A DNA stretch of 64,000 bases from Rebecca billardiae RCC1528. Lineage: Eukaryota; Protista; Haptophyta. Position numbers and translations under genes: made by a program. The notes below the pieces were generated by a model, which was not told the origin of the DNA, made no database searches, and worked only from the letters and a program-made list of their open reading frames with translations. The stretch spans positions 1,550,001 to 1,614,000 of the forward strand of contig OZ251230.1 in the NCBI GenBank assembly GCA_965240325.2, written 5' to 3'. Positions 16,674 through 48,788 of this stretch are shown here, in pieces. Numbering within the stretch: the first letter of the stretch is position 1; each line of letters starts with the position of its first letter.

Positions 16674-16776
<103 letters not shown>

Positions 16777-19414: not shown

Positions 19415-19446
<32 letters not shown>

Positions 19447-28121: not shown

Positions 28122-29318
28122 ATGGTCGACGTGAAGCACCCCAAGTGTGATCACACCGGCTGCACCAAGGTGGCTTCGTTCGGCATGCCGGGCGACGCGC
28201 GCGCCAGCCGGTGCGCTGCGCACAAGCTGGACGGCATGGTGGACGTGACGCACCGCAAGTGTGGTCACGCGGGCTGCACCAAGCTGCCTTCGTTCGGCAT
28301 GCCGGGCGACGCGCGCGCCATCCGGTGCGCCACGCACAAGCTGGCCGGCATGGTCGACCTGAAGCACCCCAAGTGTGATCACACCGGCTGCACCAAGCAG
28401 CCTCACTTCGGCATGCCGGGTGACGCGCGCGCCAGCCGGTGCGCTACGCACAAGCTGGCCGGCATGGTCGACCTGAAGCACCCCAAGTGTGATCACACCG
28501 GCTGCACCAAGGTGGCTTCGTTCGGCATGCCGGGCGACGCGCGCGCCAGCCGGTGCGCTACGCACAAGCTGGCCGGCATGGTGGACGTGAGGAGCCCCAC
28601 GTGTGATCACACAGGCTGCACCACGCGGCCTTGCTTCGGCATGCCGGGTGACGCGCGCGCCAGCCGGTGCGCCACGCACAAGCTGGCCGGCATGGTCGAC
28701 CGGAAGCACCCCAAGTGTGATCACACCGGCTGCACCAAGGGGCCTTCGTTCGGCATGCCGGGTGACGCGCGCGCCAGCCGGTGCGCTACGCACAAGCTGG
28801 CCGGCATGGTGGACGTGAGGAGCCCCAAGTGTGATCACACAGGCTGCACCAAGGTGGCTTCGTTCGGCATGCCGGGCGACGCGCGCGCCAGCCGGTGCGC
28901 CACGCACAAGCTGGCCGGCATGGTGGACGTGAGGTGCCCCAAGTGTGATCACACAGGCTGCACCACGCGGCCTACCTTCGGCATGCCGGGCGACGCGCGC
29001 GCCAGCCGGTGCGCTACGCACAAGCTGGCCGGCATGGTATGCAGTCGGCTCGCCGTCCCCAAGCGTAGGCTGGAGCATGGCACCGGCGACCAGGGCACAC
29101 GCGCAGCCAAGCGACAGCACGAACGCACCAGCCGCATTGCCACCGTCTCGGACTCCGCCCCGCAGCTGCCCGAACTGCCGCCGCTGGTTGGGAGACTGGA
29201 GAGACGAGGCATCGGGGCGGATTGCCGAACGCCGCCACACGACGGTGACACAGATGATGAGTCTGACCATTGGACGGTGACTGATGGCATCCGATCTGTC
29301 CTCCCCTTCCGACGATGA
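28122..29318 (+). CDS. EsV-1-7-type Cys-rich repeat protein, unit 1 (8 repeats)
   Basis: 8 x 114 bp encoding C-x4-C-x16-C-x2-H. Possible upstream in-frame ATG at 27966. Confidence 0.85.
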   Translation: MVDVKHPKCDHTGCTKVASFGMPGDARASRCAAHKLDGMVDVTHRKCGHAGCTKLPSFGMPGDARAIRCATHKLAGMVDLKHPKCDHTGCTKQPHFGMPGDARASRCATHKLAGMVDLKHPKCDHTGCTKVASFGMPGDARASRCATHKLAGMVDVRSPTCDHTGCTTRPCFGMPGDARASRCATHKLAGMVDRKHPKCDHTGCTKGPSFGMPGDARASRCATHKLAGMVDVRSPKCDHTGCTKVASFGMPGDARASRCATHKLAGMVDVRCPKCDHTGCTTRPTFGMPGDARASRCATHKLAGMVCSRLAVPKRRLEHGTGDQGTRAAKRQHERTSRIATVSDSAPQLPELPPLVGRLERRGIGADCRTPPHDGDTDDESDHWTVTDGIRSVLPFRR

Positions 29319-29407
29319 TGATGATTAGTTATTCCATTTATTCCGATTATGCTGATCGCACGTAGCACTATACTAGTTATTACCGAGTAGTACTACGTAT
29401 ATCATGA

Positions 29408-30232
29408 ATCTCCTTGGCGCGCGCGCGCTCGGCCTCGAGCGCGCAACGCGCCGCTCGGCGCGGCGGGCGCGCGCCGCTTCGCCCACGCACGCCGCCACCC
29501 GTCCGCGGGCTGCGGCGCCGGCCGCTTGCGCGGGCGCGGGCGCCCGACTGCACGCTCCGCAGCACCGCCGCGCGCGCGTGCTCGTCGGGGAGCAGCTTGT
29601 CCAGCTCGGGCGCCAGCGCGCGCACGTCCTGTCGTCCACCCCGACCGCGCGCAGCATGCGCTCGACGGCTGCGAACGCGCGCGTCGGCTCGAGGCGCTCG
29701 ATCGTCTTGTACGCGCCGAGGGTGGCGTTGAGCCCGCCGCAGTGCTCAGACTGCCGCACGCAGTGCCGGTTGTGCACGCGCCCTCGCCCGAGCGCTGCCG
29801 CCGCCTCGTCGAAGCTGGGGCGCGACATGCCGAATGCCTCCGAGCAATGGCGCGCGCCGTCCATGTCACGGCCCGCGGTGCACAGTGCACTTGGACGCGT
29901 ACGCCGAGGCGAAGCGCTCGAGCGGCTCTCTGTAGAAGACAGCGGCGTGCCACGTCGGGTCGGCCAGCCGCGCCGCGGCGTCCTCCACGCCCAGCCCGAA
30001 GTAGCGCAGCGTGTTGGTGTTCTGCACGAACAGCTGCTTGCGCAGCGCCGGGTCGTGCGGCGTGCGGACCGCGCGGAAGCGCGGAAGAGCTGCACGAAGT
30101 TCTGGCTCGCGACCTTGTCGATCTTGCAGAAGAGGAGCCGGTGCTCCGGCACGAGGATGAAGGAGCTGTACGAAACGAACGGTTTTGTCAGCGTGACCGC
30201 CACCCGGTCGCGTTGCTCCTCGCGCCCGCCAT
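29408..30232 (-). pseudogene. Sulfotransferase fragment, unit 2
   Basis: Same PAPS motifs, broken by short duplications near 29880 and 30075. Confidence 0.75.
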
Positions 30233-30426
30233 CATTGTGCGGCCGCCATACAATTCCGCTCCGAAAGCTGATGAGTGTTGACCACTGGCGGGCGGCGGCT
30301 GACGAAACCTTGGTGACCGTGGTGCGGGCCGAGCGGACGCACGTGTGCGGCAGTCTGGCAAGCCCTCTGCAGCTCGTCACCACGCGCGCCCTTCCGGGTG
30401 ACGCGGCCGGGCGACGCGCGCGCCTC

Positions 30427-31515
30427 ATGGTCGACGTGAAGCACCCCAAGTGTGAATACGAGGGCTGCACCATGCGGCCTTCCTTCGGCATACCGGGCGA
30501 CGCGCGCGCTAGACGGTGCGCTACGCACAAGCTGGCCGGCATGGTCAACGCGAGGAGCCCCAAGTGTGGTCACGCGGGCTGCACCACGCAGCCTACCTTC
30601 GGCATGCCGGGCGACGCGCGCGCCAGCCGGTGCGCTACGCACAAGCTGGCCGGCATGGTCGACGCGAAGCACCCCAAGTGTGATCACACAGGCTGCACCA
30701 AGGTGGCTTCGTTCGGCATGCCGGGCGACGCGCGCGCCAGCCGGTGCGCTACGCACAAGCTGGCCGGCATGGTGGACGTGAGGAGCCCCACGTGTGATCA
30801 CACCGGCTGCACCACGCGGCCTGCCTTCGGCATGCCGGGCGACGCGCGCGCCAGCCGGTGCGCTACGCACAAGCTGGCCGGCATGGTGGACGTGAGGAGC
30901 CCCAAGTGTGATCACACTGGCTGCACCAAGGTGCCTTACTTCGGCATGCCGGGAGACGCGCGCGCCAGCCGGTGCGCTAAGCACAAGCTGGCCGGCATGG
31001 TCGACCTGAAGAACCCCAAGTGTGATCACACCGGCTGCACCACGCGGCCTTCGTTCGGCATGCCGGGCGACGCGCGCGCCAGCCGGTGCGCTACGCACAA
31101 GCTGGCCGGCATGGTCGACGTGAAGCACCCCAAGTGTGATCACACTGGCTGCACCAAGCAGCCTAACTTCGGCATGCCGGGTGACGCGCGCGCCAGCCGG
31201 TGCGCTACGCACAAGCTGGCCGGCATGGTATGCAGTCGGCTCGCCGTCCCCAAGCGTAGGCTGGAGCATGGCACCGGCGACCAGGGCACACGCGCAGCCA
31301 AGCGACAGCACGAACGCACCAGCCGCATTGCCACCGTCTCGGACTCCGCCCCGCAGCTGCCCGAACTGCCGCCGCTGGTTGGGAGACTGGAGAGACGAGG
31401 CATCGGGGTGGATTGCCGAACGCCGCCACACGACGGTGACACAGATGATGAGTCTGACCATTGGACGGTGATGGCATCCGATCTGTCCTCCCCTTCCGAC
31501 GATGATGATGATTAA
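30427..31515 (+). CDS. EsV-1-7-type Cys-rich repeat protein, unit 2 (7 repeats)
   Basis: 7 x 114 bp; tail ends SDDDDD. Confidence 0.85.
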   Translation: MVDVKHPKCEYEGCTMRPSFGIPGDARARRCATHKLAGMVNARSPKCGHAGCTTQPTFGMPGDARASRCATHKLAGMVDAKHPKCDHTGCTKVASFGMPGDARASRCATHKLAGMVDVRSPTCDHTGCTTRPAFGMPGDARASRCATHKLAGMVDVRSPKCDHTGCTKVPYFGMPGDARASRCAKHKLAGMVDLKNPKCDHTGCTTRPSFGMPGDARASRCATHKLAGMVDVKHPKCDHTGCTKQPNFGMPGDARASRCATHKLAGMVCSRLAVPKRRLEHGTGDQGTRAAKRQHERTSRIATVSDSAPQLPELPPLVGRLERRGIGVDCRTPPHDGDTDDESDHWTVMASDLSSPSDDDDD

Positions 31516-31594
31516 TTATTCCATTTATTCCGATTATGCTGATCGCACGTAGCACTATACTAGTTATTACCGAGTAGTACTACGTATATCATGA

Positions 31595-32409
31595 ATCTCC
31601 TTGGCGCGCGCGCGCTCGGCCTCGAGCGCGCAACGCGCCGCTCGGCGCGGCAGACCTGTGCGCGCCGCTTCGCCCACGCACGCCGCCACCCGTCCGCGGG
31701 CTGCGGCGCCGGCCGCTTGCGCGGGGCGCGGGCGCCCGACTGCACGCTCCGCAGCACCGCCGCGCGCGCGTGCTCGTCGGGGAGCAGCTTGTCCAGCTCG
31801 GGCGCCAGCGCGCGCACGTCCTGTCGTCCACCCCCACCGCGCGCAGCATGCGCTCGACGGCTGCGAACGCGCGCGTCGGCTCGAGGCGCTCGATCGTCTT
31901 GTACGCGCCGAGGGTGATGTTGAGCCCGCCGCAGTGCTCAGACTGCCGCACGCAGTGCCGGTTGCGCACGCGCCCTCGCCCGAGCGCTGCCGCCGCCTCG
32001 TCGAAGCTGGGGCGCGACATTCCGAATGCCTCCGAGCAATGGCGCGCGCCGTCCATGTCACGGCCCGCGGTGCACTTGGACGCGTACGCCGAGGCGAAGC
32101 GCTCGAGCGGCTCTCTGTAGAAGACAGCGGCGTGCCACGTCGGGTCGGCCAGCCGCGCCGCGGCGTCCTCCACGCCCAGCCCGAAGTAGCGCAGCGTGTT
32201 GGTGTTCTGCACGAACAGCTGCTTGCGCAGCGCCGGGTCGTGCGGCGTGCGGACCGCGCGGAAGAGCTGCACGAAGTTCTGGCTCGCGACCTTGTCGATC
32301 TTGCAGAAGAGGAGCTGGTGCTCCGGCACGAGGATGAAGGAGCTGTACGAAACGAACGGTTTTGTCAGCGTGACCGCCACCCGGTCGCGTTGCTCCTCGC
32401 GCCCGCCAT
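31595..32409 (-). pseudogene. Sulfotransferase fragment, unit 3
   Basis: CKIDKVAS and YREPLERFASAY in one frame; frameshift after AVGVDD. Confidence 0.75.
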
Positions 32410-32600
32410 CATTGTGCGGCCGCCATACAATTCCGCTCCGAAAGCTGATGAGTGTTGACCACTGGCGGGCGGCTGACGAAACCTTGGTGACCGTGGTGCG
32501 GGCCGAGCGGACGCACGTGTGCGGCAGTCTGGCAAGCCCTCTGCAGCTCGTCACCACGCGCGCCCTTCCGGGTGACGCGGCCGGGCGACGCGCGCGCCTC

Positions 32601-34028
32601 ATGGTCGACGTGAAGCACCCCAAGTGTGAATACGAGGGCTGCACCATGCGGCCTTCCTTCGGCATACCGGGCGACGCGCGCGCTAGACGGTGCGCTACGC
32701 ACAAGCTGGCCGGCATGGTCAACGCGAGGAGCCCCAAGTGTGGTCACGCGGGCTGCACCACGCAGCCTACCTTCGGCATGCCGGGCGACGCGCGCGCCAG
32801 CCGGTGCGCTACGCACAAGCTGGCCGGCATGGTCGACGCGAAGCACCCCAAGTGTGATCACACCGGCTGCACCACGCGGCCTTCCTTCGGCATACCGGGC
32901 GACGCGCGCGCCAGCCGGTGCGCTACGCACAAGCTGGCCGGCATGGTGGACGTGAGGAGCCCCAAGTGTGATCACACCGGCTGCACCAAGCTGCCTCACT
33001 TCGGCATGCCGGGAGACCCGCGCGCCAGCCGGTGCACTACGCACAAGGTGGCCGGCATGGTCGATGTGAAGAACCCCAAGTGTGAACACGCCAGCTGCAC
33101 CACGCAGCCTACCTTCGGCATGCCGGGCGACGCGCGCGCCAGCCGGTGCGCTACGCACAAGCTGGCCGGCATGGTCGACGCGAAGCACCCCAAGTGTGAT
33201 CACACCGGCTGCACCACGCGGCCTGCCTTCGGCATGCCAATCGACGCGCGCGCCAGCCGGTGCGCTACGCACAAGCTGGCCGGCATGGTGGACGTGAGGA
33301 GCCCCAAGTGTGATCACACCGGCTGCACCAAGGTGGCTTCGCTCGGCATGCTGGGCGACGCTCGCGCCAGCCGGTGCGCTACGCACAAGCTGGCCGGCAT
33401 GGTCGACGTGAAGCACCCCAAGTGTGATCACACTGGCTGCACCAAGGTGGCTTCGTTCGGCATGCCGGGCGACGCGCGCGCCAGCCGGTGCGCTACGCAC
33501 AAGCTGGCCGGCATGGTGGACGTGAGGAGCCCCAAGTGTGATCACACAGGCTGCACCACGCGGCCTTGCTTCGGCATGCCGGGTGACGCGCGCGCCAGCC
33601 GGTGCGCCACGCACAAGCTGACCGGCATGGTCGACGTGAAGCACCCCAAGTGTGATCACACTGGCTGCACCAAGCGGCCTAACTTTGGCATGCCGGGTGA
33701 CGCGCGCGCCAGCCGGTGCGCTACGCACAAGCTGGCTGGCATGGTATCATGTAGTCGGCTCGCCGTCCCCAAGCGCAGGCTGGAGCATGGCACCGGCGAC
33801 CAGGGCACACGCGCAGCCAAACGACAGCACAAACGCACCAGCCGCATTACCACCGTCTCGGACTCCGCCCCGCAGCTGCCCGAACTGCCGCCGCTGGTTG
33901 GGAGACTGGAGAGACGAGGCATCGGGGCGGATTGCCGAACGCCGCCACACGGCGGTGACACAGATGATGAGTCTGACCATTGGACGGTGACTGATGGCAT
34001 CCGATCTGTCCTCCCCTTCCGACGATGA
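32601..34028 (+). CDS. EsV-1-7-type Cys-rich repeat protein, unit 3 (10 repeats)
   Basis: 10 x 114 bp; tail ends VLPFRR. Confidence 0.85.
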   Translation: MVDVKHPKCEYEGCTMRPSFGIPGDARARRCATHKLAGMVNARSPKCGHAGCTTQPTFGMPGDARASRCATHKLAGMVDAKHPKCDHTGCTTRPSFGIPGDARASRCATHKLAGMVDVRSPKCDHTGCTKLPHFGMPGDPRASRCTTHKVAGMVDVKNPKCEHASCTTQPTFGMPGDARASRCATHKLAGMVDAKHPKCDHTGCTTRPAFGMPIDARASRCATHKLAGMVDVRSPKCDHTGCTKVASLGMLGDARASRCATHKLAGMVDVKHPKCDHTGCTKVASFGMPGDARASRCATHKLAGMVDVRSPKCDHTGCTTRPCFGMPGDARASRCATHKLTGMVDVKHPKCDHTGCTKRPNFGMPGDARASRCATHKLAGMVSCSRLAVPKRRLEHGTGDQGTRAAKRQHKRTSRITTVSDSAPQLPELPPLVGRLERRGIGADCRTPPHGGDTDDESDHWTVTDGIRSVLPFRR

Positions 34029-34117
34029 TGATGATTAGTTATTCCATTTATTCCGATTATGCTGATCGCACGTAGCACTATACTAGTTATTACCGAGTAG
34101 AACTACGTATATCATGA

Positions 34118-34929
34118 ATCTCCTTGGCGCGCGCGCGCTCGGCCTCGAGCGCGCAACGCGCGCCGCTCGGTGCGGCGGGCGCGCGCCGCTTCGCCCACGC
34201 ACGCCGCCACCCGTCCGCGGGCTGCGGCGCCGGCCGCTTGCGCGGGGCGCGGGCGCCCGACTGCACGCTCCGCAGCACCGCCGCGCGCGCGTGCTCGTCG
34301 GGGAGCAGCTTGTCCAGCTCGGGCGCCAGCGCGCGCACGTCCTGTCGTCCACCCCGACCGCGCGCAGCATGCGCTCGACGGCTGCGAACGCGCGCGTCGG
34401 CTCGAGGCGCTCGATCGTCTTGTACGCGCCGAGGGTGGCGTTGAGCCCGCCGCAGTGCTCAGACTGCCGCACGCAGTGCCGGTTGTGACGCGCCCTCGCC
34501 CGAGCGCTGCCGACGCCTCGTCGAAGCTGGGGCGCGACATGCCGAATGCCTCTGAGCAATGGCGCGCGCCGTCCATGTCACGGCCCGCGGTGCACTTGGA
34601 CGCGTACGCCGAGGCGAAGCGCTCGAGCGGCTCTCTGTAGAAGACAGCGGCGTGCCACGTCGGGTCGGCCAGCCGCGCCGCGCCGTCCTCCACGCCCAGC
34701 CCGAAGTAGCGCAGCGTGTTGGTGTTCTGCACGAACAGCTGCTTGCGCAGCGCTGGGTCGTGCGGCGTGCGGACCGTGCGGAAGAGCTGCACGAAGTTCT
34801 GGCTCACGACCTTGTCGATCTTGCAGAAGAGGAGCTGGTGCTCCGGCACGAGGATGAAGGAGCTGTACGAAACGAACGCGGCGCTCATCGCGACCGCCAC
34901 CCGGTCGCGTTGCTCCTCGCGCCCGCCAT
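34118..34929 (-). pseudogene. Sulfotransferase fragment, unit 4
   Basis: PAPS motifs present; 1-bp deletion near 34487. Confidence 0.75.
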
Positions 34930-35153
34930 TGTGCGGCCGCCATACAATTCCGCTCCGAAAGCTGATGACCACTGGCGAGCGGGCGGCGGCTGACGAAACC
35001 TTGTTGCTGCAACTTGGAGTGCGCTGGCGTGGATCCGGTGTCCGAGGCGCGGGCCGAGCGGACGCAACGTGTGGCGGCAGTGTGGCAAGCCCTCTGCAGC
35101 TCGTCACCACGCGCGCCCTTCCGGGTGACGCTGCCGGGCGACGCGCGCGCCAC

Positions 35154-36242
35154 ATGGTCGACGTGAAGCACCCCAAGTGTGATCACACCGGCTGCACCAA
35201 GGTGGCTTCGTTCGGCATGCTGGGCGACGCGCGCGCCAGCCGGTGCGCTACGCACAAGCTGGCCGGCATGGTCGACGTGAGGAGCCCCAAGTGTGATCAC
35301 ACCGGCTGCACCACGCGGCCTACCTTCGGCATGCCGGGTGACGCGCGCGCCAGCCGGTGCGCTACGCACAAGCTGACCGGCATGGTCGACTTGAAGCACC
35401 CCAAGTGTGATCACACTGGCTGCACCAAGCAGCCTAACTTCGGCATGCCAGGAGACGCGTGCGCCAGCCGGTGCGCTGCGCACAAGCTGGCCGGCATGGT
35501 CGACGTGAAGAACCCCAAGTGTGATCACACCGGCTGCACCAAGTGGCCTTCATTCGGCATGCCGGGCGAGCGGCGCGCCAGCCGGTGCGCTGCGCACAAG
35601 CTGGCCGGCATGGTCGACGTGAAGCACCCCAAGTGTGATCACACAGGCTGCACCAAGGTGGCTTCGTTCGGCATGCCGGGCGACGCGCGCGCAAGCCGGT
35701 GCGCTACGCACAAGCTGGCCGGCATGGTGGACGTGACGAGCCCCAAGTGTGATCACACAGGCTGCATCACGCGGCCTACCTTCGGCATGCCGGGCGACGC
35801 GCGCGCCAGCCGGTGCGCTGCGCACAAGCTGACCGGCATGGTCGACGTGAAGAACCCCAAGTGCGATCACACCGGCTGCACCAAGGGGCCTTCGTTCGGC
35901 ATGCCGGGCGACGCGCGCGCCAGCCGGTGCGCTACGCACAAGCTGGCCGGCATGGTACGCAGTCGGCTCGCCGTCCCCAAGCGTAGGCTGGAGCATGGCA
36001 CCGGCGACCAGGGCACACGCGCAGCCAAGCGACAGCACGAACGCACCAGCCGCATTGCCACCGTCTCGGACTCCGCCCTGCAGCTGCCCGAACTGCCGCC
36101 GCTGGTTGGGAGACTGGAGAGACGAGGCATCGGGGCGGATTGCCGTACGCCGCCACACGACGGTGACACAGATGATGAGTCTGACCATTGGACGGTGATG
36201 GCATCCGATCTGTCCTCCCGTTCCGACGATGATGATGATTAA
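35154..36242 (+). CDS. EsV-1-7-type Cys-rich repeat protein, unit 4 (7 repeats)
   Basis: 7 x 114 bp. Confidence 0.85.
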   Translation: MVDVKHPKCDHTGCTKVASFGMLGDARASRCATHKLAGMVDVRSPKCDHTGCTTRPTFGMPGDARASRCATHKLTGMVDLKHPKCDHTGCTKQPNFGMPGDACASRCAAHKLAGMVDVKNPKCDHTGCTKWPSFGMPGERRASRCAAHKLAGMVDVKHPKCDHTGCTKVASFGMPGDARASRCATHKLAGMVDVTSPKCDHTGCITRPTFGMPGDARASRCAAHKLTGMVDVKNPKCDHTGCTKGPSFGMPGDARASRCATHKLAGMVRSRLAVPKRRLEHGTGDQGTRAAKRQHERTSRIATVSDSALQLPELPPLVGRLERRGIGADCRTPPHDGDTDDESDHWTVMASDLSSRSDDDDD

Positions 36243-36319
36243 TTATTCCATTTATTCCGATTATGCTGATCGCACGTAGCACTACTAGTTATTACCGAGT
36301 AGTACTACGTATATCATGA

Positions 36320-37129
36320 ATCTCCTTGGCGCGCGCGCGCTCGGCCTCGAGCGCGCAACGCGCCGCTCGGCGCGGCGGGCGCGCGCCGCTTCGCCCACGC
36401 ACGCCGCCACCCGTCCGCGGGCTGCGGCGCCGGCCGCTTGCGCGGGGCGCGGGCGCCCGACTGCACGCTCCGCAGCACCGCCGCGCGCGCGTGCTCGTCG
36501 GGGAGCAGCTTGTCCAGCTCGGGCGCCAGCGCGCGCACGTCCTGTCGTCCACCCCGACCGCGCGCAGCATGCGCTCGACGGCTGCGAACGCGCGCGTCGG
36601 CTCGAGGCGCTCGATCGTCTTGTACGCGCCGAGGGTGGCGTTGAGCCCGCCGCAGTGCTCAGACTGCCGCACGCAGTGCCGGTTGTGACGCGCCCTCGCC
36701 CGAGCGCTGCCGACGCCTCGTCGAAGCTGGGGCGCAACATGCCAAATGCCTCTGAGCAATGGCGCGCGCCGTCCATGTCACGGCCCGCGGTGCACTTGGA
36801 CGCGTACGCCGAGGCGAAGCGCGCGAGCGGCTCTCTGTAGAAGACAGCGGCGTGCCACGTCGGGTCGGCCAGCCGCGCCGCGCCGTCCTCCACGCCCAGC
36901 CCGAAGTAGCGCAGCGTGTTGGTGTTCTGCACGAACAGCTGCTTGCGCAGCGCTGGGTCGTGCGGCGTGCGGACCGTGCGGAAGAGCTGCACGAAGTTCT
37001 GGCTCACGACCTTGTCGATCTTGCAGAAGAGGAGCTGGTGCTCCGGCACGAGGATGAAGGAGCTGTACGAAACGAACGCGGCGCTCATCGCGACCGCCAC
37101 CCGGTCGCGTTGCTCCTCGCGCCCGCCAT
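36320..37129 (-). pseudogene. Sulfotransferase fragment, unit 5
   Basis: PAPS motifs present (REPLARF variant); frameshifts. Confidence 0.75.
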
Positions 37130-37353: not shown

Positions 37354-38670
37354 ATGGTCGACGTGAAGCACCCCAAGTGTGATCACACCGGCTGCACCAA
37401 GGTGGCTTCGTTCGGCATGCTGGGCGACGCGCGCGCCAGCCGGTGCGCTACGCACAAGGTGGCCGGCATGGTCGACCTGAAGCACCCCAAGTGTGATCAC
37501 ACCGGCTGCACCAAGGTGCCTTCCTTCGGCATGCCGGGCGACGCGCGCGCCATCCGGTGCGCTACGCACAAGCTGGCCGGCATGGTCGACCTGAAGAACC
37601 CCAAGTGTGATCACACCGGCTGCACCACGCGGCCTACCTTCGGCATGCCGGGTGACGCGCGCGCCAGCCGGTGCGCTACGCACAAGCTGCCCGGCATGGT
37701 CGACTTGAAGCACCCCAAGTGTGATCACACTGGCTGCACCAAGCAGCCTAACTTCGGCATGCCAGGAGACGCGTGCGCCAGCCGGTGCGCTACGCACAAG
37801 CTGGCCGGCATGGTCGACGTGAAGAACCCCAAGTGTGATCACACCGGCTGCACCAAGTGGCCTTCATTCGGCATGCCGGGCGAGCGGCGCGCCAGCCGGT
37901 GCGCTGCGCACAAGCTGGCCGGCATGGTCGACGTGAAGCACCCCAAGTGTGATCACACAGGCTGCACCAAGGTGGCTTCGTTCGGCATGCCGGGCGACGC
38001 GCGCGCAAGCCGGTGCGCTACGCACAAGCTGGCCGGCATGGTGGACGTGACGAGCCCCAAGTGTGATCACACAGGCTGCATCACGCGGCCTACCTTCGGC
38101 ATGCCGGGCGACGCGCGCGCCAGCCGGTGCGCTGCGCACAAGCTGACCGGCATGGTCGACCTGAAGCACCCCAAGTGTGATCACACCGGCTGCACCACGC
38201 GGCCTTCCTTCGGCATGCCGGGCGACGCGCGCGCCATCCGGTGCGCTACGCACAAGCTGGCCGGCATGGTGGACGTGAGGAGCCCCAAGTGTGATAACAC
38301 TGGCTGCACCAAGCAGCCTAACTTCGGCATGCCGGGCGACGCGCGCGCCAGCCGGTGCGCTACGCACAAGCTGGCCGGCATGGTACGCAGTCGGCTCGCC
38401 GTCCCCAAGCGTAGGCTGGAGCATGGCACCGGCGACCAGGGCACACGCGCAGCCAAGCGACAGCACGAACGCACCAGCCGCATTGCCACCGTCTCGGACT
38501 CCGCCCTGCAGCTGCCCGAACTGCCGCCGCTGGTTGGGAGACTGGAGAGACGAGGCATCGGGGCGGATTGCCGTACGCCGCCACACGACGGTGACACAGA
38601 TGATGAGTCTGACCATTGGACGGTGATGGCATCCGATCTGTCCTCCCGTTCCGACGATGATGATGATTAA
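37354..38670 (+). CDS. EsV-1-7-type Cys-rich repeat protein, unit 5 (9 repeats)
   Basis: 9 x 114 bp. Confidence 0.85.
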   Translation: MVDVKHPKCDHTGCTKVASFGMLGDARASRCATHKVAGMVDLKHPKCDHTGCTKVPSFGMPGDARAIRCATHKLAGMVDLKNPKCDHTGCTTRPTFGMPGDARASRCATHKLPGMVDLKHPKCDHTGCTKQPNFGMPGDACASRCATHKLAGMVDVKNPKCDHTGCTKWPSFGMPGERRASRCAAHKLAGMVDVKHPKCDHTGCTKVASFGMPGDARASRCATHKLAGMVDVTSPKCDHTGCITRPTFGMPGDARASRCAAHKLTGMVDLKHPKCDHTGCTTRPSFGMPGDARAIRCATHKLAGMVDVRSPKCDNTGCTKQPNFGMPGDARASRCATHKLAGMVRSRLAVPKRRLEHGTGDQGTRAAKRQHERTSRIATVSDSALQLPELPPLVGRLERRGIGADCRTPPHDGDTDDESDHWTVMASDLSSRSDDDDD

Positions 38671-38749
38671 TTATTCCATTTATTCCGATTATGCTGATCG
38701 CACGTAGCACTATACTAGTTATTACCGAGTAGAACTACGTATATCATGA

Positions 38750-39784: not shown

Positions 39785-40873
39785 ATGGTCGACGTGAAGC
39801 ACCCCAAGTGTGATCACACCGGCTGCACCAAGGTGGCTTCGTTCGGCATGCTGGGCGACGCGCGCGCCAGCCGGTGCGCTACGCACAAGCTGGCCGGCAT
39901 GGTCGACGTGAGGAGCCCCAAGTGTGATCACACCGGCTGCACCACGCGGCCTACCTTCGGCATGCCGGGTGACGCGCGCGCCAGCCGGTGCGCTACGCAC
40001 AAGCTGACCGGCATGGTCGACTTGAAGCACCCCAAGTGTGATCACACTGGCTGCACCAAGCAGCCTAACTTCGGCATGCCAGGAGACGCGTGCGCCAGCC
40101 GGTGCGCTGCGCACAAGCTGGCCGGCATGGTCGACGTGAAGAACCCCAAGTGTGATCACACCGGCTGCACCAAGTGGCCTTCATTCGGCATGCCGGGCGA
40201 GCGGCGCGCCAGCCGGTGCGCTGCGCACAAGCTGGCCGGCATGGTCGACGTGAAGCACCCCAAGTGTGATCACACAGGCTGCACCAAGGTGGCTTCGTTC
40301 GGCATGCCGGGCGACGCGCGCGCAAGCCGGTGCGCTACGCACAAGCTGGCCGGCATGGTGGACGTGACGAGCCCCAAGTGTGATCACACAGGCTGCATCA
40401 CGCGGCCTACCTTCGGCATGCCGGGCGACGCGCGCGCCAGCCGGTGCGCTGCGCACAAGCTGACCGGCATGGTCGACGTGAAGAACCCCAAGTGCGATCA
40501 CACCGGCTGCACCAAGGGGCCTTCGTTCGGCATGCCGGGCGACGCGCGCGCCAGCCGGTGCGCTACGCACAAGCTGGCCGGCATGGTACGCAGTCGGCTC
40601 GCCGTCCCCAAGCGTAGGCTGGAGCATGGCACCGGCGACCAGGGCACACGCGCAGCCAAGCGACAGCACGAACGCACCAGCCGCATTGCCACCGTCTCGG
40701 ACTCCGCCCTGCAGCTGCCCGAACTGCCGCCGCTGGTTGGGAGACTGGAGAGACGAGGCATCGGGGCGGATTGCCGTACGCCGCCACACGACGGTGACAC
40801 AGATGATGAGTCTGACCATTGGACGGTGATGGCATCCGATCTGTCCTCCCGTTCCGACGATGATGATGATTAA
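39785..40873 (+). CDS. EsV-1-7-type Cys-rich repeat protein, unit 6 (7 repeats; same as unit 4)
   Basis: 7 x 114 bp in the same repeat order as unit 4. Confidence 0.85.
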   Translation: MVDVKHPKCDHTGCTKVASFGMLGDARASRCATHKLAGMVDVRSPKCDHTGCTTRPTFGMPGDARASRCATHKLTGMVDLKHPKCDHTGCTKQPNFGMPGDACASRCAAHKLAGMVDVKNPKCDHTGCTKWPSFGMPGERRASRCAAHKLAGMVDVKHPKCDHTGCTKVASFGMPGDARASRCATHKLAGMVDVTSPKCDHTGCITRPTFGMPGDARASRCAAHKLTGMVDVKNPKCDHTGCTKGPSFGMPGDARASRCATHKLAGMVRSRLAVPKRRLEHGTGDQGTRAAKRQHERTSRIATVSDSALQLPELPPLVGRLERRGIGADCRTPPHDGDTDDESDHWTVMASDLSSRSDDDDD

Positions 40874-40950
40874 TTATTCCATTTATTCCGATTATGCTGA
40901 TCGCACGTAGCACTACTAGTTATTACCGAGTAGTACTACGTATATCATGA

Positions 40951-41760
40951 ATCTCCTTGGCGCGCGCGCGCTCGGCCTCGAGCGCGCAACGCGCCGCTCG
41001 GCGCGGCGGGCGCGCGCCGCTTCGCCCACGCACGCCGCCACCCGTCCGCGGGCTGCGGCGCCGGCCGCTTGCGCGGGGCGCGGGCGCCCGACTGCACGCT
41101 CCGCAGCACCGCCGCGCGCGCGTGCTCGTCGGGGAGCAGCTTGTCCAGCTCGGGCGCCAGCGCGCGCACGTCCTGTCGTCCACCCCGACCGCGCGCAGCA
41201 TGCGCTCGACGGCTGCGAACGCGCGCGTCGGCTCGAGGCGCTCGATCGTCTTGTACGCGCCGAGGGTGGCGTTGAGCCCGCCGCAGTGCTCAGACTGCCG
41301 CACGCAGTGCCGGTTGTGACGCGCCCTCGCCCGAGCGCTGCCGACGCCTCGTCGAAGCTGGGGCGCAACATGCCAAATGCCTCTGAGCAATGGCGCGCGC
41401 CGTCCATGTCACGGCCCGCGGTGCACTTGGACGCGTACGCCGAGGCGAAGCGCGCGAGCGGCTCTCTGTAGAAGACAGCGGCGTGCCACGTCGGGTCGGC
41501 CAGCCGCGCCGCGCCGTCCTCCACGCCCAGCCCGAAGTAGCGCAGCGTGTTGGTGTTCTGCACGAACAGCTGCTTGCGCAGCGCTGGGTCGTGCGGCGTG
41601 CGGACCGTGCGGAAGAGCTGCACGAAGTTCTGGCTCACGACCTTGTCGATCTTGCAGAAGAGGAGCTGGTGCTCCGGCACGAGGATGAAGGAGCTGTACG
41701 AAACGAACGCGGCGCTCATCGCGACCGCCACCCGGTCGCGTTGCTCCTCGCGCCCGCCAT
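40951..41760 (-). pseudogene. Sulfotransferase fragment, unit 7
   Basis: Essentially identical to the unit 5 fragment. Confidence 0.75.
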
Positions 41761-41984
41761 TGTGCGGCCGCCATACAATTCCGCTCCGAAAGCTGATGAC
41801 CACTGGCGAGCGGGCGGCGGCTGACGAAACCTTGTTGCTGCAACTTGGAGTGCGCGGGCGTGGATCCGGTGACCGAGGCGCGGGCCGAGCGGACGCAACG
41901 TGTGGCGGCAGTGTGGCAAGCCCTCTGCAGCTCGTCACCACGCGCGCCCTTCCGGGTGACGCTGCCGGGCGACGCGCGCGCCAC

Positions 41985-43301
41985 ATGGTCGACGTGAAGC
42001 ACCCCAAGTGTGATCACACCGGCTGCACCAAGGTGGCTTCGTTCGGCATGCTGGGCGACGCGCGCGCCAGCCGGTGCGCTACGCACAAGGTGGCCGGCAT
42101 GGTCGACCTGAAGCACCCCAAGTGTGATCACACCGGCTGCACCAAGGTGCCTTCCTTCGGCATGCCGGGCGACGCGCGCGCCATCCGGTGCGCTACGCAC
42201 AAGCTGGCCGGCATGGTCGACCTGAAGAACCCCAAGTGTGATCACACCGGCTGCACCACGCGGCCTACCTTCGGCATGCCGGGTGACGCGCGCGCCAGCC
42301 GGTGCGCTACGCACAAGCTGCCCGGCATGGTCGACTTGAAGCACCCCAAGTGTGATCACACTGGCTGCACCAAGCAGCCTAACTTCGGCATGCCAGGAGA
42401 CGCGTGCGCCAGCCGGTGCGCTACGCACAAGCTGGCCGGCATGGTCGACGTGAAGAACCCCAAGTGTGATCACACCGGCTGCACCAAGTGGCCTTCATTC
42501 GGCATGCCGGGCGAGCGGCGCGCCAGCCGGTGCGCTGCGCACAAGCTGGCCGGCATGGTCGACGTGAAGCACCCCAAGTGTGATCACACAGGCTGCACCA
42601 AGGTGGCTTCGTTCGGCATGCCGGGCGACGCGCGCGCAAGCCGGTGCGCTACGCACAAGCTGGCCGGCATGGTGGACGTGACGAGCCCCAAGTGTGATCA
42701 CACAGGCTGCATCACGCGGCCTACCTTCGGCATGCCGGGCGACGCGCGCGCCAGCCGGTGCGCTGCGCACAAGCTGACCGGCATGGTCGACCTGAAGCAC
42801 CCCAAGTGTGATCACACCGGCTGCACCACGCGGCCTTCCTTCGGCATGCCGGGCGACGCGCGCGCCATCCGGTGCGCTACGCACAAGCTGGCCGGCATGG
42901 TGGACGTGAGGAGCCCCAAGTGTGATAACACTGGCTGCACCAAGCAGCCTAACTTCGGCATGCCGGGCGACGCGCGCGCCAGCCGGTGCGCTACGCACAA
43001 GCTGGCCGGCATGGTATGCAGTCGGCTCGCCGTCCCCAAGCGTAGGCTGGAGCATGGCACAGGCGACCAGGGCACACGCGCAGCCAAGCGACAGCACGAA
43101 CGCACCAGCCGCATTGCCACCGTCTCGGACTCCGCCCCGCAGCTGCCCGAACTGCCGCCGCTGGTTGGGAGACTGGAGAGACGAGGCATCGGGGCGGATT
43201 GCCGAACGCCGCCACACGGCGGTGACACAGATGATGAGTCTGACCATTGGACGGTGATGGCATCCGATCTGTCCTCCCCTTCCGACGACGATGATGATTA
43301 A
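41985..43301 (+). CDS. EsV-1-7-type Cys-rich repeat protein, unit 7 (9 repeats; same repeats as unit 5)
   Basis: 9 x 114 bp; tail of the unit-8 type. Confidence 0.85.
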   Translation: MVDVKHPKCDHTGCTKVASFGMLGDARASRCATHKVAGMVDLKHPKCDHTGCTKVPSFGMPGDARAIRCATHKLAGMVDLKNPKCDHTGCTTRPTFGMPGDARASRCATHKLPGMVDLKHPKCDHTGCTKQPNFGMPGDACASRCATHKLAGMVDVKNPKCDHTGCTKWPSFGMPGERRASRCAAHKLAGMVDVKHPKCDHTGCTKVASFGMPGDARASRCATHKLAGMVDVTSPKCDHTGCITRPTFGMPGDARASRCAAHKLTGMVDLKHPKCDHTGCTTRPSFGMPGDARAIRCATHKLAGMVDVRSPKCDNTGCTKQPNFGMPGDARASRCATHKLAGMVCSRLAVPKRRLEHGTGDQGTRAAKRQHERTSRIATVSDSAPQLPELPPLVGRLERRGIGADCRTPPHGGDTDDESDHWTVMASDLSSPSDDDDD

Positions 43302-43378
43302 TTATTCCATTTATTCCGATTATGCTGATCGCACGTAGCACTACTAGTTATTACCGTGTAGTACTACGTATATCATGA

Positions 43379-44185
43379 ATCTCCTTGGCGCGCGCGCGCT
43401 CGGCCTCGAGCGCTACGCGCCTCTCGGCGCGGCGGGCGCGCGCCGTTTCGCCCACGCACGCCGCCACCCGTCCGCGGGCTGCGGCGCCGGCCGCTTGCGC
43501 GGGGCGCGGGCGCCCGACTGCACGCTCCGCAGCACCGCCGCGCGCGCGTGCTCGTCGGGGAGCAGCTTGTCCAGCTCGGGCGCCAGCGCGCGCACGTCCT
43601 GTCGTCCACCCCGACCGCGCGCAGCATGCGCTCGACGGCTGCGAACGCGCGCGTCGGCTCGAGGCGCTCGATCGTCTTGTACGCGCCGAGGGTGGCGTTG
43701 AGCCCGCCGCAGTGCTCAGACTGCCGCACGCAGTGCCGGTTGTGCACGCGCCCTCGCCCGAGCGCTGCCGCCGCCTCGTCGAAGCTGGGGCGCGACATGC
43801 CGAATGCCTCCGAGCAATGGCGCGCGCCGTCCATGTCACGGCCCGCGGTGCACTTGGACGCGTACGCCGAGGCGAAGCGCTCGAGCGGCTCTCTGTAGAA
43901 GACAGCGGCGTGCCACGTCGGGTCGGCCAGCCGCGCCGCGGCGTCCTCCACGCCCAGCCCGAAGTAGCGCAGCGTGTTGGTGTTCTGCACGAACAGCTGC
44001 TTGCGCAGCGCTGGGTCGTGCGGCGTGCGGACCGCGCGGAAGAGCTGCACGAAGTTCCGGCTCACGACCTTGTCGATCTTGCAGAAGAGGAGCTGGTGCT
44101 CCGGCACGAGGATGAAGGAGCTGTACGAAACGAACGCGGCGCTCAGGCGACCGCCACCCGGTCGCGTTGCTCCTCGCGCCCGCCA
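43379..44185 (-). pseudogene. Sulfotransferase fragment, unit 8
   Basis: PAPS motifs present; frameshift after AVGVDD. Confidence 0.75.
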
Positions 44186-44410: not shown

Positions 44411-45955
44411 ATGGTCGACGTGAAGCACCCCAAGTGTGATCACACCGGCTGCACCAAGGTGGCTTCGTTCGGCATGCCGGGCGACGCGCGCGCCAGCCGG
44501 TGCGCTGCGCACAAGCTGGCCGGCATGGTGGACGTGAGGAGCCCCAAGTGTGATCACACAGGCTGCACCACGCGGCCTACCTTCGGCATGCCGGGCGACG
44601 CGCGCGCCAGCCGGTGCGCTGCGCACAAGCTGGCCGGCATGGTCGACCTGAAGAACCCCAAGTGTGATCACACCAGCTGCGCCACGCGGCCTACCTTCGG
44701 CATGCCGGGCGACGCGCGCGCAAGCCGGTGCGCTACGCACAAGCTGCCCGGCATGGTCGACTTGAAGCACCCCAAGTGTGATCACACTGGCTGCACCAAG
44801 CAGCCTAACTTCGGCATGCCGGGCGACGCGCGCGCAAGCCGGTGCGCTACGCACAAGCTGGCCGGCATGGTCGACCTGAAGCACCCCAAGTGTGATCACA
44901 CCGGCTGCACCAAGGTGGCTTCGCTCGGCATGCTGGGCGACGCTCGCGCCAGCCGGTGCGCTACGCACAAGCTGGCCGGCATGGTCGACCTGAAGCACCC
45001 CAAGTGTGATCACACCGGCTGCACCAAGCTGCCTTCGTTCGGCATGCCGGGCGACGCGCGCGCCAGCCGGTGCGCTACGCACAAGCTGGCCGGCATGGTC
45101 GACGTGAAGAACCCCAAGTGCGATCACACCGGCTGCACCAAGGGGCCTTCGTTCGGCATGCCGGGTGACGCGCGCGCCAGCCGGTGCGCTACGCACAAGC
45201 TGGGAGGCATGGTGGACGTGAGGAGCCCCAAGTGTGATCACACAGGCTGCACCAAGCAGCCTAACTTCGGCATGCCGGGCGACGCGCGCGCCAGCCGGTG
45301 CGCTACGCACAAGCTGGCCGGCATGGTGGACGTGAGGAGCCCCACGTGTGATCACACAGGCTGCACCACGCGGCCTTGCTTCGGCATGCCGGGCGACGCG
45401 CGCGCCAGCCGGTGCGCCACGCACAAGCTGGCCGGCATGGTGGACGTGAGGAGCCCCAAGTGTGATCACACTGGCTGCACCAAGCAGCCTAACTTCGGCA
45501 TGCCGGGCGACGCGCGCGCCAGCCGGTGCGCTACGCACAAGCTGGCCGGCATGGTGGACGTGAGGAGCCCGAAGTGTGATAACACTGGCTGCACCAAGCA
45601 GCCTAACTTCGGCATGCCGGGCGACGCGCGCGCCAGCCGGTGCGCTACGCACAAGCTGGCCGGCATGGTATGCAGTCGGCTCGCCGTCCCCAAGCGTAGG
45701 CTGGAGCATGGCACCGGCGACCAGGGCACACGCGCAGCCAAGCGACAGCACGAACGCACCAGCCGCATTGCCACCGTCTCGGACTCCGCCCCGCAGCTGC
45801 CCGAACTGCCGCGGCTGGTTGGGAGACTGGAGAGACGAGGCATCGGGGCGGATTGCCGAACGCCGCCACACGGCGGTGACACAGATGATGAGTCTGACCA
45901 TTGGACGGTGATGGCATCCGATCTGTCCTCCCCTTCCGACGACGATGATGATTAG
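44411..45955 (+). CDS. EsV-1-7-type Cys-rich repeat protein, unit 8 (11 repeats)
   Basis: 11 x 114 bp. Confidence 0.85.
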   Translation: MVDVKHPKCDHTGCTKVASFGMPGDARASRCAAHKLAGMVDVRSPKCDHTGCTTRPTFGMPGDARASRCAAHKLAGMVDLKNPKCDHTSCATRPTFGMPGDARASRCATHKLPGMVDLKHPKCDHTGCTKQPNFGMPGDARASRCATHKLAGMVDLKHPKCDHTGCTKVASLGMLGDARASRCATHKLAGMVDLKHPKCDHTGCTKLPSFGMPGDARASRCATHKLAGMVDVKNPKCDHTGCTKGPSFGMPGDARASRCATHKLGGMVDVRSPKCDHTGCTKQPNFGMPGDARASRCATHKLAGMVDVRSPTCDHTGCTTRPCFGMPGDARASRCATHKLAGMVDVRSPKCDHTGCTKQPNFGMPGDARASRCATHKLAGMVDVRSPKCDNTGCTKQPNFGMPGDARASRCATHKLAGMVCSRLAVPKRRLEHGTGDQGTRAAKRQHERTSRIATVSDSAPQLPELPRLVGRLERRGIGADCRTPPHGGDTDDESDHWTVMASDLSSPSDDDDD

Positions 45956-46032
45956 TTATTCCATTTATTCCGATTATGCTGATCGCACGTAGCACTACTA
46001 GTTATTACCGAGTAGTACTACGTATATCATGA

Positions 46033-46843
46033 ATCTCCTTGGCGCGCGCGCGCTCGGCCTGGAGCGCTTCGCGCCTCTCGGCGCGGCGGGCGCGCGCCGC
46101 TTCGCCCACGCACGCCGCCACCCGTCCGCGGGCTGCGGCGCCGGCCGCTTGCGCGGGGCGCGGGCGCCCGACTGCACGCCCCGCAGCACCGCCGCGCGCG
46201 CGTGCTCGTCGGGGAGCAGCTTGTCCAGCTCGGGCGCCAGCGCGCGCACGTCCTGTCGTCCACCCCGACCGCGCGCAGCATGCGCTCGACGGCTGCGAAC
46301 GCGCGCGTCGGCTCGAGGCGCTCGATCGTCTTGTACGCGCCGAGGGTGGCGTTGAGCCCGCCGCAGTGCTCAGACTGCCGCACGCAGTGCCGATTGTGCA
46401 CGCGCCCTCGCCCGAGCGCTGCCGCCGCCTCGTCGAAGCTGGGGCGCGACATGCCGAATGCCTCCGAGCAATGGCGCACGCCGTCCATGTCACGGCCCGC
46501 GGTGCACTTGGACACGGACGCCGAGGCGAAGCGCTCGAGCGGCTCTCTGTAGAAGACAGCGGCGTGCCACGTCGGGTCGGCCAGCCGCGCCGCGGCGTCC
46601 TCCACGCCCAGCCCGAAGTAGCGCAGCGTGTTGGTGTTCTGCACGAACAGCTGCTTGCGCAGCGCCGGGTCGTGCGGCGTGCGGACCGCGCGGAAGAGCT
46701 GCACGAAGTTCTGGCTCGCGACCTTGTCGTCGATCTTGCAGAAGAGGAGCCGTTGCTCCGGCACGAGGATGAAGGAGCTGTACGAAACGAACGCGGCGCT
46801 CAGGCGACCGCCACCCGGTCGCGTTGCTCCTCGCGCCCGCCAT
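46033..46843 (-). pseudogene. Sulfotransferase fragment, unit 9
   Basis: Both PAPS motifs altered (CKIDDKVAS; ERFASASV). Confidence 0.75.
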
Positions 46844-47066
46844 TGTGCGGCCGCCATACAATTCCGCTCCGAAAGCTGATGACCACTGGCGAGCGGGCGG
46901 CGGCTGACGAAACCTTGTTGCTGCAACTTGGAGTGCGCGGGCGTGGATCCGGTGACCGAGGCGCGGGCCGAGCGGACGCACGTGTGGCGGCAGTGTGGCA
47001 AGCCCTCTGCAGCTCGTCACCACGCGCGCCCTTCCGGGTGACGCTGCCGGGCGACGCGCGCGCCAC

Positions 47067-48788
47067 ATGGTCGACGTGAAGCACCCCAAGTGTGATTACG
47101 AGGGCTGCACCACGCGGCCTACCTTCGGCATGCTGGGCGATGCGCGCGCCAGCCGGTGCGCTGCGCACAAGCTGGCCGGCATGGTCGACGTGAAGAACCC
47201 CAAGTGTGATCACACAGGCTGCACCAAGGTGCCTTCGTTCGGCATGCCGGGCGACACGCGCGCCAGCCGGTGCGCTACGCACAAGCTGGCCGGCATGGTG
47301 GACGTGAGGAGCCCCAAGTGTGATCACACCAGCTGCACCACGCGGCCTTCATTCGGCATGCTGGGCGACGCGCGCGCCAGCCGGTGCGCTGCGCACAAGC
47401 TGGCCGGCATGGTCGACCTGAAGCACCCCAAGTGTGATCACACCGGCTGCACCACGCGGCCTACCTTCGGCATGCCGGGCGACGCGCGCGCAAGCCGGTG
47501 CGCTACGCACAAGCTGGCCGGCATGGTCGACCTGAAGCACCCCAAGTGTGGTCACACCGGCTGCACCAAGGTGGCTTCGCTCGGCATGCTGGGCGACGCT
47601 CGCGCCAGCCGGTGCGCTACGCACAAGCTGGCCGGCATGGTCGACCTGAAGCACCCCAAGTGTGATCACACCGGCTGCACCAAGCTGCCTTCGTTCGGCA
47701 TGCCGGGCGACGCGCGCGCCAGCCGGTGCGCTACGCACAAGCTGGCCGGCATGGTCGACCTGAAGAACCCCAAGTGTGATCACACCAGCTGCGCCACGCG
47801 GCCTACCTTCGGCATGCCGGGCGACGCGCGCGCCAGCCGGTGCGCTACGCACAAGCTGGCCGGCATGGTCGACCTGAAGCACCCCAAGTGTGATCACACC
47901 GGCTGCACCAAGGTGCCTTACTTCGGCATGCCGGGCGACGCGCGCGCCAGCCGGTGCACTACGCACAAGCTGGCCGGCATGGTGGACGTGAAGCACCACA
48001 AGTGTGATCACACTAGCTGCACCAAGCAGCCTAACTTTGGCATGCCGGGTGACGCGCGCGCCAGCCGGTGCGCCACGCACAAGCTGGCCGGCATGGTGGA
48101 CGTGAGGAGCCCCAAGTGTGATCACACTGGCTGCACCAAGCAGCCTCACTTCGGCATGCCGGGTGACGCGCGCGCCAGCCGGTGCGCTACGCACAAGCTG
48201 GCCGGCATGGTCGATGTGAGGAGCCCCAAGTGTGATCACACTGGCTGCACCAAGCAGCCTAACTTTGGCATGCCGGGTGACGCGCGCGCCAGCCGGTGCG
48301 CCACGCACAAGCTGGCCGGCATGGTGGACGTGAGGAGCCCCAAGTGTGATCACACTGGCTGCACCAAGCGGCCTAACTTTGGCATGCCGGGTGACGCGCG
48401 CGCCAGCCGGTGCGCTACGCACAAGCTGGCCGGCATGGTATCATGTAGTCGACTCGCCGTCCCCAAGCGCAGGCTGGAGCATGGCACCGGCGACCAGGGC
48501 ACACGCGCAGCCAAGCGACTACAGCACGAACGCACCAGCCGCATTGCCACCGTCTCGGACTCCGCCCCGCAGCTGCCCGAACTGCCGCCGCTGGTTGGGA
48601 GACTCGAGAGACGAGGCATCGGGGCGGATGGCCGAACGCCGCCACGACACGACGGTGACACAGATGATGAGTCTGACCATTGGACGGTGATGGCATCCGA
48701 TCTGTCCTCCCAGCAGGCTGCTTCCGTGAGTTCCGACGATGATGATGATCTGATTCATTACGATGATTATGCTGATGATCGCACGTAG
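47067..48788 (+). CDS. EsV-1-7-type Cys-rich repeat protein, unit 9 (12 repeats)
   Basis: 12 x 114 bp; longer acidic tail SDDDDDLIHYDDYADDRT. Confidence 0.85.
   Translation: MVDVKHPKCDYEGCTTRPTFGMLGDARASRCAAHKLAGMVDVKNPKCDHTGCTKVPSFGMPGDTRASRCATHKLAGMVDVRSPKCDHTSCTTRPSFGMLGDARASRCAAHKLAGMVDLKHPKCDHTGCTTRPTFGMPGDARASRCATHKLAGMVDLKHPKCGHTGCTKVASLGMLGDARASRCATHKLAGMVDLKHPKCDHTGCTKLPSFGMPGDARASRCATHKLAGMVDLKNPKCDHTSCATRPTFGMPGDARASRCATHKLAGMVDLKHPKCDHTGCTKVPYFGMPGDARASRCTTHKLAGMVDVKHHKCDHTSCTKQPNFGMPGDARASRCATHKLAGMVDVRSPKCDHTGCTKQPHFGMPGDARASRCATHKLAGMVDVRSPKCDHTGCTKQPNFGMPGDARASRCATHKLAGMVDVRSPKCDHTGCTKRPNFGMPGDARASRCATHKLAGMVSCSRLAVPKRRLEHGTGDQGTRAAKRLQHERTSRIATVSDSAPQLPELPPLVGRLERRGIGADGRTPPRHDGDTDDESDHWTVMASDLSSQQAASVSSDDDDDLIHYDDYADDRT

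Follow-up and report, generated by a model that had tools for sequence, protein, structure and literature searches.

How can the repeat modules of a protein family be nearly identical throughout a genome and still differ at a few fixed residues? The question is raised by 64,000 nucleotides of the haptophyte Rebecca billardiae RCC1528, hereafter the window (contig OZ251230.1, positions 1,550,001 to 1,614,000 of the forward strand; part of contig 13 of assembly GCA_965240325.2, which has 72 Mb in 41 contigs and about 70% G+C), in which nine genes encode arrays of EsV-1-7 cysteine-rich repeats. A first-pass annotation, made from the letters alone, had proposed that concerted evolution homogenises the scaffold of these repeats while selection keeps diversity at contact sites, as in the PRDM9 minisatellite. 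The analysis described below partly supports this interpretation: the locus is a well-defined case, in a known family, of modules that are homogenised except at fixed positions, where selection probably keeps diversity.

Modules and variable positions

Tandem Repeats Finder, applied to the 64-kb window, placed nine arrays of a 114-bp unit at 28121-48439 (7.1-12.1 copies each, 88-92% matches), and in-frame reading of their plus strand gave 80 complete units of 38 residues. The array open reading frames (ORFs) were scanned against Pfam and matched PF19114, the EsV-1-7 repeat, alone (412 and 485 bits, the cut-off being 25, over 9 and 11 stretches); no C2H2, SET or KRAB domain was detected in the scan. 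Residues are numbered from the methionine of the unit (Met = 1). The signature C-x4-C-x16-C-x2-H, with a period of about 38 residues, was present in all 80 window units and in the 439 units of a genome-wide set, made up of the window and 28 further loci (29 loci, 53 arrays, 379 distinct units); Cys9, Cys14, Cys31 and His34 were invariant in both. To judge from these four residues and from an AlphaFold model computed without metal, the modules are presumably C2CH modules that bind zinc. Arrays 5 and 6 (Table 1) are base-perfect copies of two others and therefore contribute no independent data; they were dropped from the window statistics, for which 64 units were used (58 distinct units in the site tests).

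Nine positions are variable genome-wide: 4-7, in the linker that leads up to the first Cys; 12, enclosed by the first Cys pair; 16, 17 and 19, which follow closely on the second Cys; and 33, within the Cys-x2-His pair. Position 18 is variable only in the K-V-A-S type of the window. The codon pattern that the first-pass annotation had described was recovered in the 64 window units. Its position-3 codon (residue 17) was CGG, GTG, CAG, CTG, GGG or TGG, with a wobble base that was always G, and its position-5 codon (residue 19) was TCG, ACC, AAC, TCC, CAC, TGC, TCA, GCC or TAC. All of the linker types that it had listed were found, spanning residues 4-7, and the scaffold codons were near-fixed (TGC14, GGC21, CGG30, TGC31, CAC34 and AAG35, each in 64 of 64 units). 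The further statement that the scaffold is quieter even at silent sites did not hold: silent nucleotide diversity (piS) was 0.11 in the scaffold, not below the 0.09 of the variable codons, and was low throughout.

Each variable position draws on a small set of residues. At position 16, 98% of units carry K or T; at position 6, about 92% carry S, H or N; at position 7, about 90% carry P or R; and position 4 is V or L. Such narrow sets argue against mere relaxation, which does not predict them. Module types recur across chromosomes (K-V-P-S in 52 units, T-R-P-Y in 30), and the variable positions combine fairly freely, with 64 types at positions 16-19, 87 linker types and a pairwise mutual information between positions of 0.04-0.43 bits. 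Neighbouring modules do not avoid sharing a type (10.1% the same when adjacent against 12.5% when non-adjacent). Whether linker type co-varies with the adjacent pentapeptide had been proposed as a check. Mutual information exceeded that of shuffles for the pentapeptide of the same unit (z = 14.6) and of the next unit (z = 10.7), both values being confounded by paralogy, and position by position it was small (at most 0.23 bits).

Replacement and silent diversity

In the window, the ratio of replacement to silent nucleotide diversity (piN/piS) was 3.56 at residues 4-6 and 16-19 against 0.34 elsewhere, and heterozygosity was 0.286 at the nondegenerate sites of variable codons against 0.128 at four-fold degenerate sites (Mann-Whitney p = 0.0098). 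Genome-wide, mean per-nucleotide heterozygosity was 0.376 at the 17 nondegenerate sites of variable codons, 0.145 at 21 four-fold degenerate sites and 0.044 at 58 nondegenerate scaffold sites. The excess of the first class over four-fold sites was significant (Mann-Whitney p = 0.0003), with a ratio of 2.63 (2.44-2.84 by bootstrap over loci), and the scaffold sites reached 0.3 times the four-fold value. This comparison is independent of any tree and is the firmest evidence for diversity above the neutral level.

The same diversity would arise without selection if the variable codons were mutational hotspots, by CpG deamination or another local bias, an explanation which, in its CpG form, the earlier annotation had named as one that would refute its own. 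Some of the data are of the kind that hotspots would produce. CpG hypermutation is visible at silent sites, where four-fold sites in CpG context are four times as diverse as the others (heterozygosity 0.248 against 0.064), and the changes of CGG into CAG or TGG (codon 17) and of GCG into GTG (codon 33) are of the CpG transition type. Among the replacement steps at variable sites, however, just 19% were CpG transitions and 55% transversions, against 52% CpG transitions among silent scaffold steps. The nondegenerate sites of variable codons also exceeded the CpG-context four-fold sites in heterozygosity, the wobble bases were quiet in seven of the nine variable codons (0.04-0.11), and the major alternatives (K/T at 16, V/L at 4, P/R at 7, KH versus RS at 5-6) need transversions or several steps. 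Hotspots alone are thus largely refuted, and we regard them as a very improbable source of the diversity.

Tests of selection and recombination

Codon likelihoods were computed with a program of our own, which on the IQ-TREE codon tree returned a log-likelihood of -1125.96 (-1125.958 in IQ-TREE). Site by site in the window, site 17 had a replacement rate (beta) of 3.0 against a silent rate (alpha) of 0 (p = 0.002), and sites 19 and 4 were significant only under a shared silent rate. With the 379 distinct units of the genome-wide set, beta was 4 against an alpha of 0.1 at site 17 (p = 2e-14), and beta also exceeded alpha at sites 7 (p = 6e-5), 33 (p = 2e-4) and 5 (p = 0.01). An M1a/M2a-type mixture on a fixed tree gave, genome-wide, a likelihood-ratio statistic of 198.7 with a ratio of replacement to silent rates (omega2) of 2.5 for 14% of sites (5, 6, 17, 19 and 33); in the window the statistic was 12.8 (p = 0.0017; sites 4, 17 and 19). 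Site models assume one tree and the units clearly recombine; the result was therefore bounded from the other side, by allele counts and by a minimum-spanning network of the units.

Several points from both sides weigh against selection for diversity. Recombination among units inflates tree-based omega. Genome-wide, the site-by-site test gave sites 19 and 12 very high silent rates, with beta below alpha, and sites 4 and 16 an omega near 1. When each codon allele was counted once, the limit at which recombination explains all sharing, the variable sites showed 42 replacement and 15 silent steps, equal to the neutral ratio of 2.85:1 (omega about 1); the scaffold showed 33 and 23 (omega about 0.4). 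On the network, omega at variable sites was 0.83 for 1-nt edges and 1.30 for edges of up to 2 nt, neither significant; for edges of up to 3 nt it was 1.62 (p = 0.0005), and overall 1.52. Only site 17 was robust in every test. Four-fold sites are 86% G or C, and selection on codon usage could depress silent diversity.

The signal therefore lies in the frequency of the replacement alleles and not in their number. The selection for diversity that had been claimed would fit the mixture test (omega about 2.5) and the result at site 17, and it is not seen in the single-allele count or on the shortest network edges, where omega is about 1.

These last values are what would be found if constraint were only relaxed, that is, if the nine positions were unconstrained (omega = 1) and duplication and recombination had carried a handful of old replacement alleles to high frequency, without any selection for diversity. 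The minimal counts, the shortest edges and the fit of sites 4 and 16 all agree with such an account. Neutral sites should, however, equal silent sites in heterozygosity at any recombination rate, and 2.6 times more was observed. Position 16 is almost confined to K and T though M and R are one step away, the change from ACG to ATG being a CpG transition. The arrays of distant relatives are most variable at the same positions (17, 6, 19, 5 and 33; Spearman 0.79) and keep a conserved residue repertoire there. Taking both sides together, we consider relaxed constraint alone an unlikely explanation.

Homogenisation and array turnover

Four-fold silent divergence was compared between 15 loci. It was 0.278 in the single-copy tail beside the array against 0.090 in the repeat units, and the tail was the more diverged in 101 of 105 locus pairs. 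Units of one array diverged by 0.088, about the same as units of different loci. Scaffold distance was likewise nearly equal within an array (0.051) and between loci on other contigs (0.059), so that there is almost no array-local homogenisation, and its scale is the genome. The rare, non-preferred T-ending codons TGT9, GAT10, CCT18 and GCT32 were retained in 342-362 of the 379 distinct units. Since they are kept in more than 90% of units, the uniformity comes from descent or conversion and not from codon preference. It is thus supported that, compared with the unique sequence beside them, the modules have been homogenised genome-wide and that the nine positions escape. The concerted evolution proposed at the outset stands in the comparison of units with tails; it was found on a genome-wide scale and not within the array.

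The variable residues might instead mark old module subtypes, classes that diverged anciently and whose scaffold is kept uniform by purifying selection, with neither concerted evolution nor ongoing diversification. The recurrence of module types across chromosomes and the near-equality of scaffold distances within arrays and between loci would fit such classes. Against them stand the silent sites of the units, three times less diverged between loci than those of the tail, and the T-ending codons common to nearly all units; purifying selection on the protein cannot explain either. The fairly free combination of the variable positions also speaks against fixed classes, and we consider old subtypes improbable.

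Array flanks share 97-100% identity, yet the number of units in the arrays ranges from 7 to 12 and their order differs. The modules here are also far more alike than those of the relatives sampled: unit identity is about 85%, against a median of 54% within the arrays of the latter.

Charge and predicted structure

The arrays are strongly basic, with an isoelectric point of 9.3-9.5 and a net charge of +20 to +37, or about +3 per module. Each is followed by a tail with a net charge of +7 in its first 35 residues and -11 in its last 35. A basic bipartite segment resembling a nuclear localization signal (NLS) is kept in all classes of tail, of which the genome has at least three.

Array 3 with its tail (35154-36242) was used as the query for the homologue search and for AlphaFold modelling. 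With an alignment of diverse homologues, the repeats were modelled with a predicted local distance difference test score (pLDDT) of about 95, and the tail, at 40-50, was predicted to be disordered; an alignment of 140 paralogous four-unit segments gave no confident model (mean pLDDT 36.6). The model is almost helix-free. DSSP assigned to it a beta-bridge that joins unit position 8 to position 17, and a short ladder that joins positions 20-22 to positions 1-3 of the next unit, an arrangement which would place residues 4-7 beside residues 17-19 around the first Cys pair.

Relatives and their C-terminal domain

The EsV-1-7 family has been described as having an unknown function and as perhaps being a new class of zinc finger; it is associated with giant viruses and is expanded, in tandem clusters, in brown algae (10.1101/2024.02.19.579948; 10.64898/2026.04.27.720984; PMC7457493). 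In the searchable literature on this family, nothing was found on fixed hypervariable positions, on tests of selection or on arrays as homogeneous as these.

Among database proteins, the nearest share at most 64% identity with the window protein (repeats 35-64%) and belong to giant viruses, green and brown algae, and metagenomes. In brown algae the EsV-1-7 proteins make up one of the largest of all gene families; they include a developmental regulator, IMM, and occur in giant viruses as well. The spacing and the 38-residue period found here are those of the family, as represented by PF19114, by Ectocarpus IMMEDIATE UPRIGHT, by the gene of Ectocarpus virus EsV-1 and by the brown-algal expansions. 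Brown-algal members likewise lie in tandem clusters (10.1101/2024.02.19.579948), and the lack of any other Pfam domain is also shared (10.64898/2026.04.27.720984). The present case differs in its host, a haptophyte and not a brown alga, and in the great size of the family, besides the likeness of its modules. A first look at the genome gave 816 candidates on more than 20 contigs, and a degenerate half-unit precedes many arrays on other contigs.

Proteins of giant viruses and metagenomes (labelled 'uncultured virus' or 'viral metagenome') share the repeats and their most variable positions with the window genes. Most of them carry a C-terminal domain of about 150 residues, in contrast to the short, disordered, basic and acidic tail found here. 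This domain is conserved in 98 of 120 relatives and has the order R-P-D ... E-x-D-E-x-Q-H ... N-P-D, with invariant R-P-D, E-x-D-E-x-Q-H, R and N-P-D motifs. Searches of Pfam, PHROGs, PADLOC and the PDB returned weak matches at most and no family assignment. The weak matches were to REase_MTES_1575 (E 0.13), to a PHROG homing endonuclease (E 0.006) and to a protein-atlas cluster of PvuRts1I-like endonucleases (score 0.89); the nearest atlas clusters are stand-alone giant-virus proteins. From such resemblances we suggest, as a hypothesis only, that the domain may be a nuclease of the restriction or homing endonuclease type. If so, it would be directed to its target by the repeats, and DNA would then be the favoured ligand of these. 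When the Rebecca genome was searched with a nuclease-bearing relative, the 150 matches listed were matches to the repeats only.

Possible ligand and comparison with known systems

The observations on diversity, homogenisation and module order are best explained jointly, by a combination that we hold to be probable, though well short of secure. The arrays would evolve by module shuffling, in which unequal exchange or gene conversion draws on a pool of module types common to the whole genome. Selection would keep, and at some sites drive, amino acid diversity at the positions that determine the recognition of each module. The ligand would most probably be nucleic acid, read modularly along the array, and new module orders would give new targets.

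Some results tell against the part of this reading that concerns the ligand. Fold relatives of the model were sought with Foldseek in the PDB (best E 1.6) and with VIA-align 2 among 48,161 chains (best Z 2.7, to RING/B-box-like zinc domains), and hidden Markov model searches of PDB sequences with three alignments gave no match; none of the solved structures covered was similar to the model. The window genes do not have the nuclease-like domain of their relatives, and the domain itself is unclassified.

The term contact sites and the comparison with PRDM9, both taken from the first-pass annotation, are analogies. Like the C2H2 minisatellites of PRDM9 and KRAB proteins, the arrays are coding minisatellites of near-identical units with a few fixed variable residues, more replacement than silent diversity and a homogenised scaffold, and the number and order of units change between very recent copies. 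Unlike those, they consist of a 38-residue C2CH unit, occur in many paralogous genes and not at one allelic locus, and are homogenised genome-wide and not within the array. The arrays of TAL effectors (and of BurrH/Bat) are similar in being long runs of near-identical repeats of 33-38 residues with few variable positions, and in TAL effectors the array is likewise followed by a basic NLS-like segment and an acidic C-terminus. TAL repeats, however, are two-helix, metal-free repeats with a two-residue code, whereas the modules here have an almost helix-free model, are built on Cys and His and vary at nine positions. A reading of one base by one module would here be pure conjecture.

A more specific version of the modular reading is offered tentatively, as possible and rather less than likely. 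EsV-1-7 modules would be a natural form of programmable nucleic-acid recognition, in which residues 16, 17 and 19 and the preceding linker (4-7) read a short step of the target. Hundreds of constantly re-shuffled arrays, with their NLS-like segment and acidic tail, would act in regulation or in defence against giant viruses and mobile DNA, and would be derived from, or compete with, the nuclease-fused versions of giant viruses.

The genome offers a clean natural experiment, with hundreds of modules that are alike save at nine positions and neighbouring genes that differ in module order only. The nine positions are candidate specificity residues, and the arrays are ready-made test sets for binding assays. 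Should the modules read nucleic acid modularly, they would add a further class of programmable binder to zinc fingers, TAL effectors and the pentatricopeptide (PPR) and PUF repeats. Should they not, the locus would still be a clear case, outside animals, of genome-wide homogenisation with site-specific retention of diversity.

Organisation of the cluster

Nine gene pairs make up the region, which is a young tandem cluster (Table 1). Each EsV-1-7 gene is paired head-to-head with a minus-strand Sulfotransfer_2-like ORF (PF03567, E 1e-8 to 1e-10, with partial coverage of the model), and the pair is present nine times with a period of 2.2-2.7 kb. The tails of the nine genes are mutually 93-100% identical. 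Among units 1-8, the Sulfotransfer_2-like ORFs share 98-100% identity; a frame change in the C-terminal half sets copies apart, and some may be pseudogenes or contain introns. The perfect repeat of 3.3 kb within the cluster reflects either a segmental duplication of very recent date or an artefact of assembly.

Table 1. Positions in the window of the EsV-1-7 arrays and associated features
Feature	Position	Strand	Basis or remark	End of tail
EsV-1-7 array 0, 8 units of 114 bp	28122..29033	+	Tandem Repeats Finder, in-frame reading; PF19114 in sister ORFs	29318
EsV-1-7 array 1, 7 units	30427..31224	+	Tandem Repeats Finder, in-frame reading	31515
EsV-1-7 array 2, 10 units	32601..33740	+	Tandem Repeats Finder, in-frame reading	34028
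EsV-1-7 array 3, 7 units	35154..35951	+	In-frame reading	36242
EsV-1-7 array 4, 9 units	37354..38379	+	PF19114, E 1.7e-126, 9 stretches	38670
EsV-1-7 array 5, 7 units	39785..40582	+	In-frame reading; identical copy of array 3	40873
EsV-1-7 array 6, 9 units	41985..43010	+	In-frame reading; identical copy of array 4	43301
EsV-1-7 array 7, 11 units	44411..45664	+	PF19114, E 3.5e-149	45955
EsV-1-7 array 8, 12 units	47067..48434	+	Tandem Repeats Finder, in-frame reading	48788
C-terminal tail after array 3 (example; one such tail per array)	35952..36242	+	Basic NLS-like segment, then acidic end	
Sulfotransfer_2-like ORF (example)	40916..42007	-	PF03567	
Other Sulfotransfer_2-like ORFs	29373-30563, 31589-32737, 34112-35176, 36285-37376, 38744-40159 (part), 43373-44150 (approx.), 46027-47001	-		
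3.3-kb segment	35066..38385		Base-for-base identical to 39697-43016 (offset 4631 bp); two complete arrays inside	

Seven of the EsV-1-7 genes have an in-frame Met 51-100 codons upstream of the array. The genes at 39785 and 47067 have none, and a stop lies 37 codons upstream. The 5' ends of the gene models may involve an intron, or the proteins may start at the Met of the first module.

The cluster has ordinary host genes as neighbours, coding for a Ski2/Mtr4-type helicase, an ankyrin protein and a U-box protein. An origin of the cluster by viral insertion was considered and is unsupported, the neighbours being host genes and the G+C content uniform. The helicase is encoded by the ORF at 17331-22613 (plus strand; DEAD, Helicase_C and DSHCT domains; Ski2/Mtr4-type RNA helicase), which carries GC-rich trinucleotide and 12-27-bp coding repeats at 20236-21606. 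Elsewhere in the window, pure (AT)n microsatellites of 26 and 50 copies lie at 1110-1162 and 16676-16775, amid sequence of about 70% G+C, and a 166-bp tandem duplication with 97% identity lies at 54215-54558.

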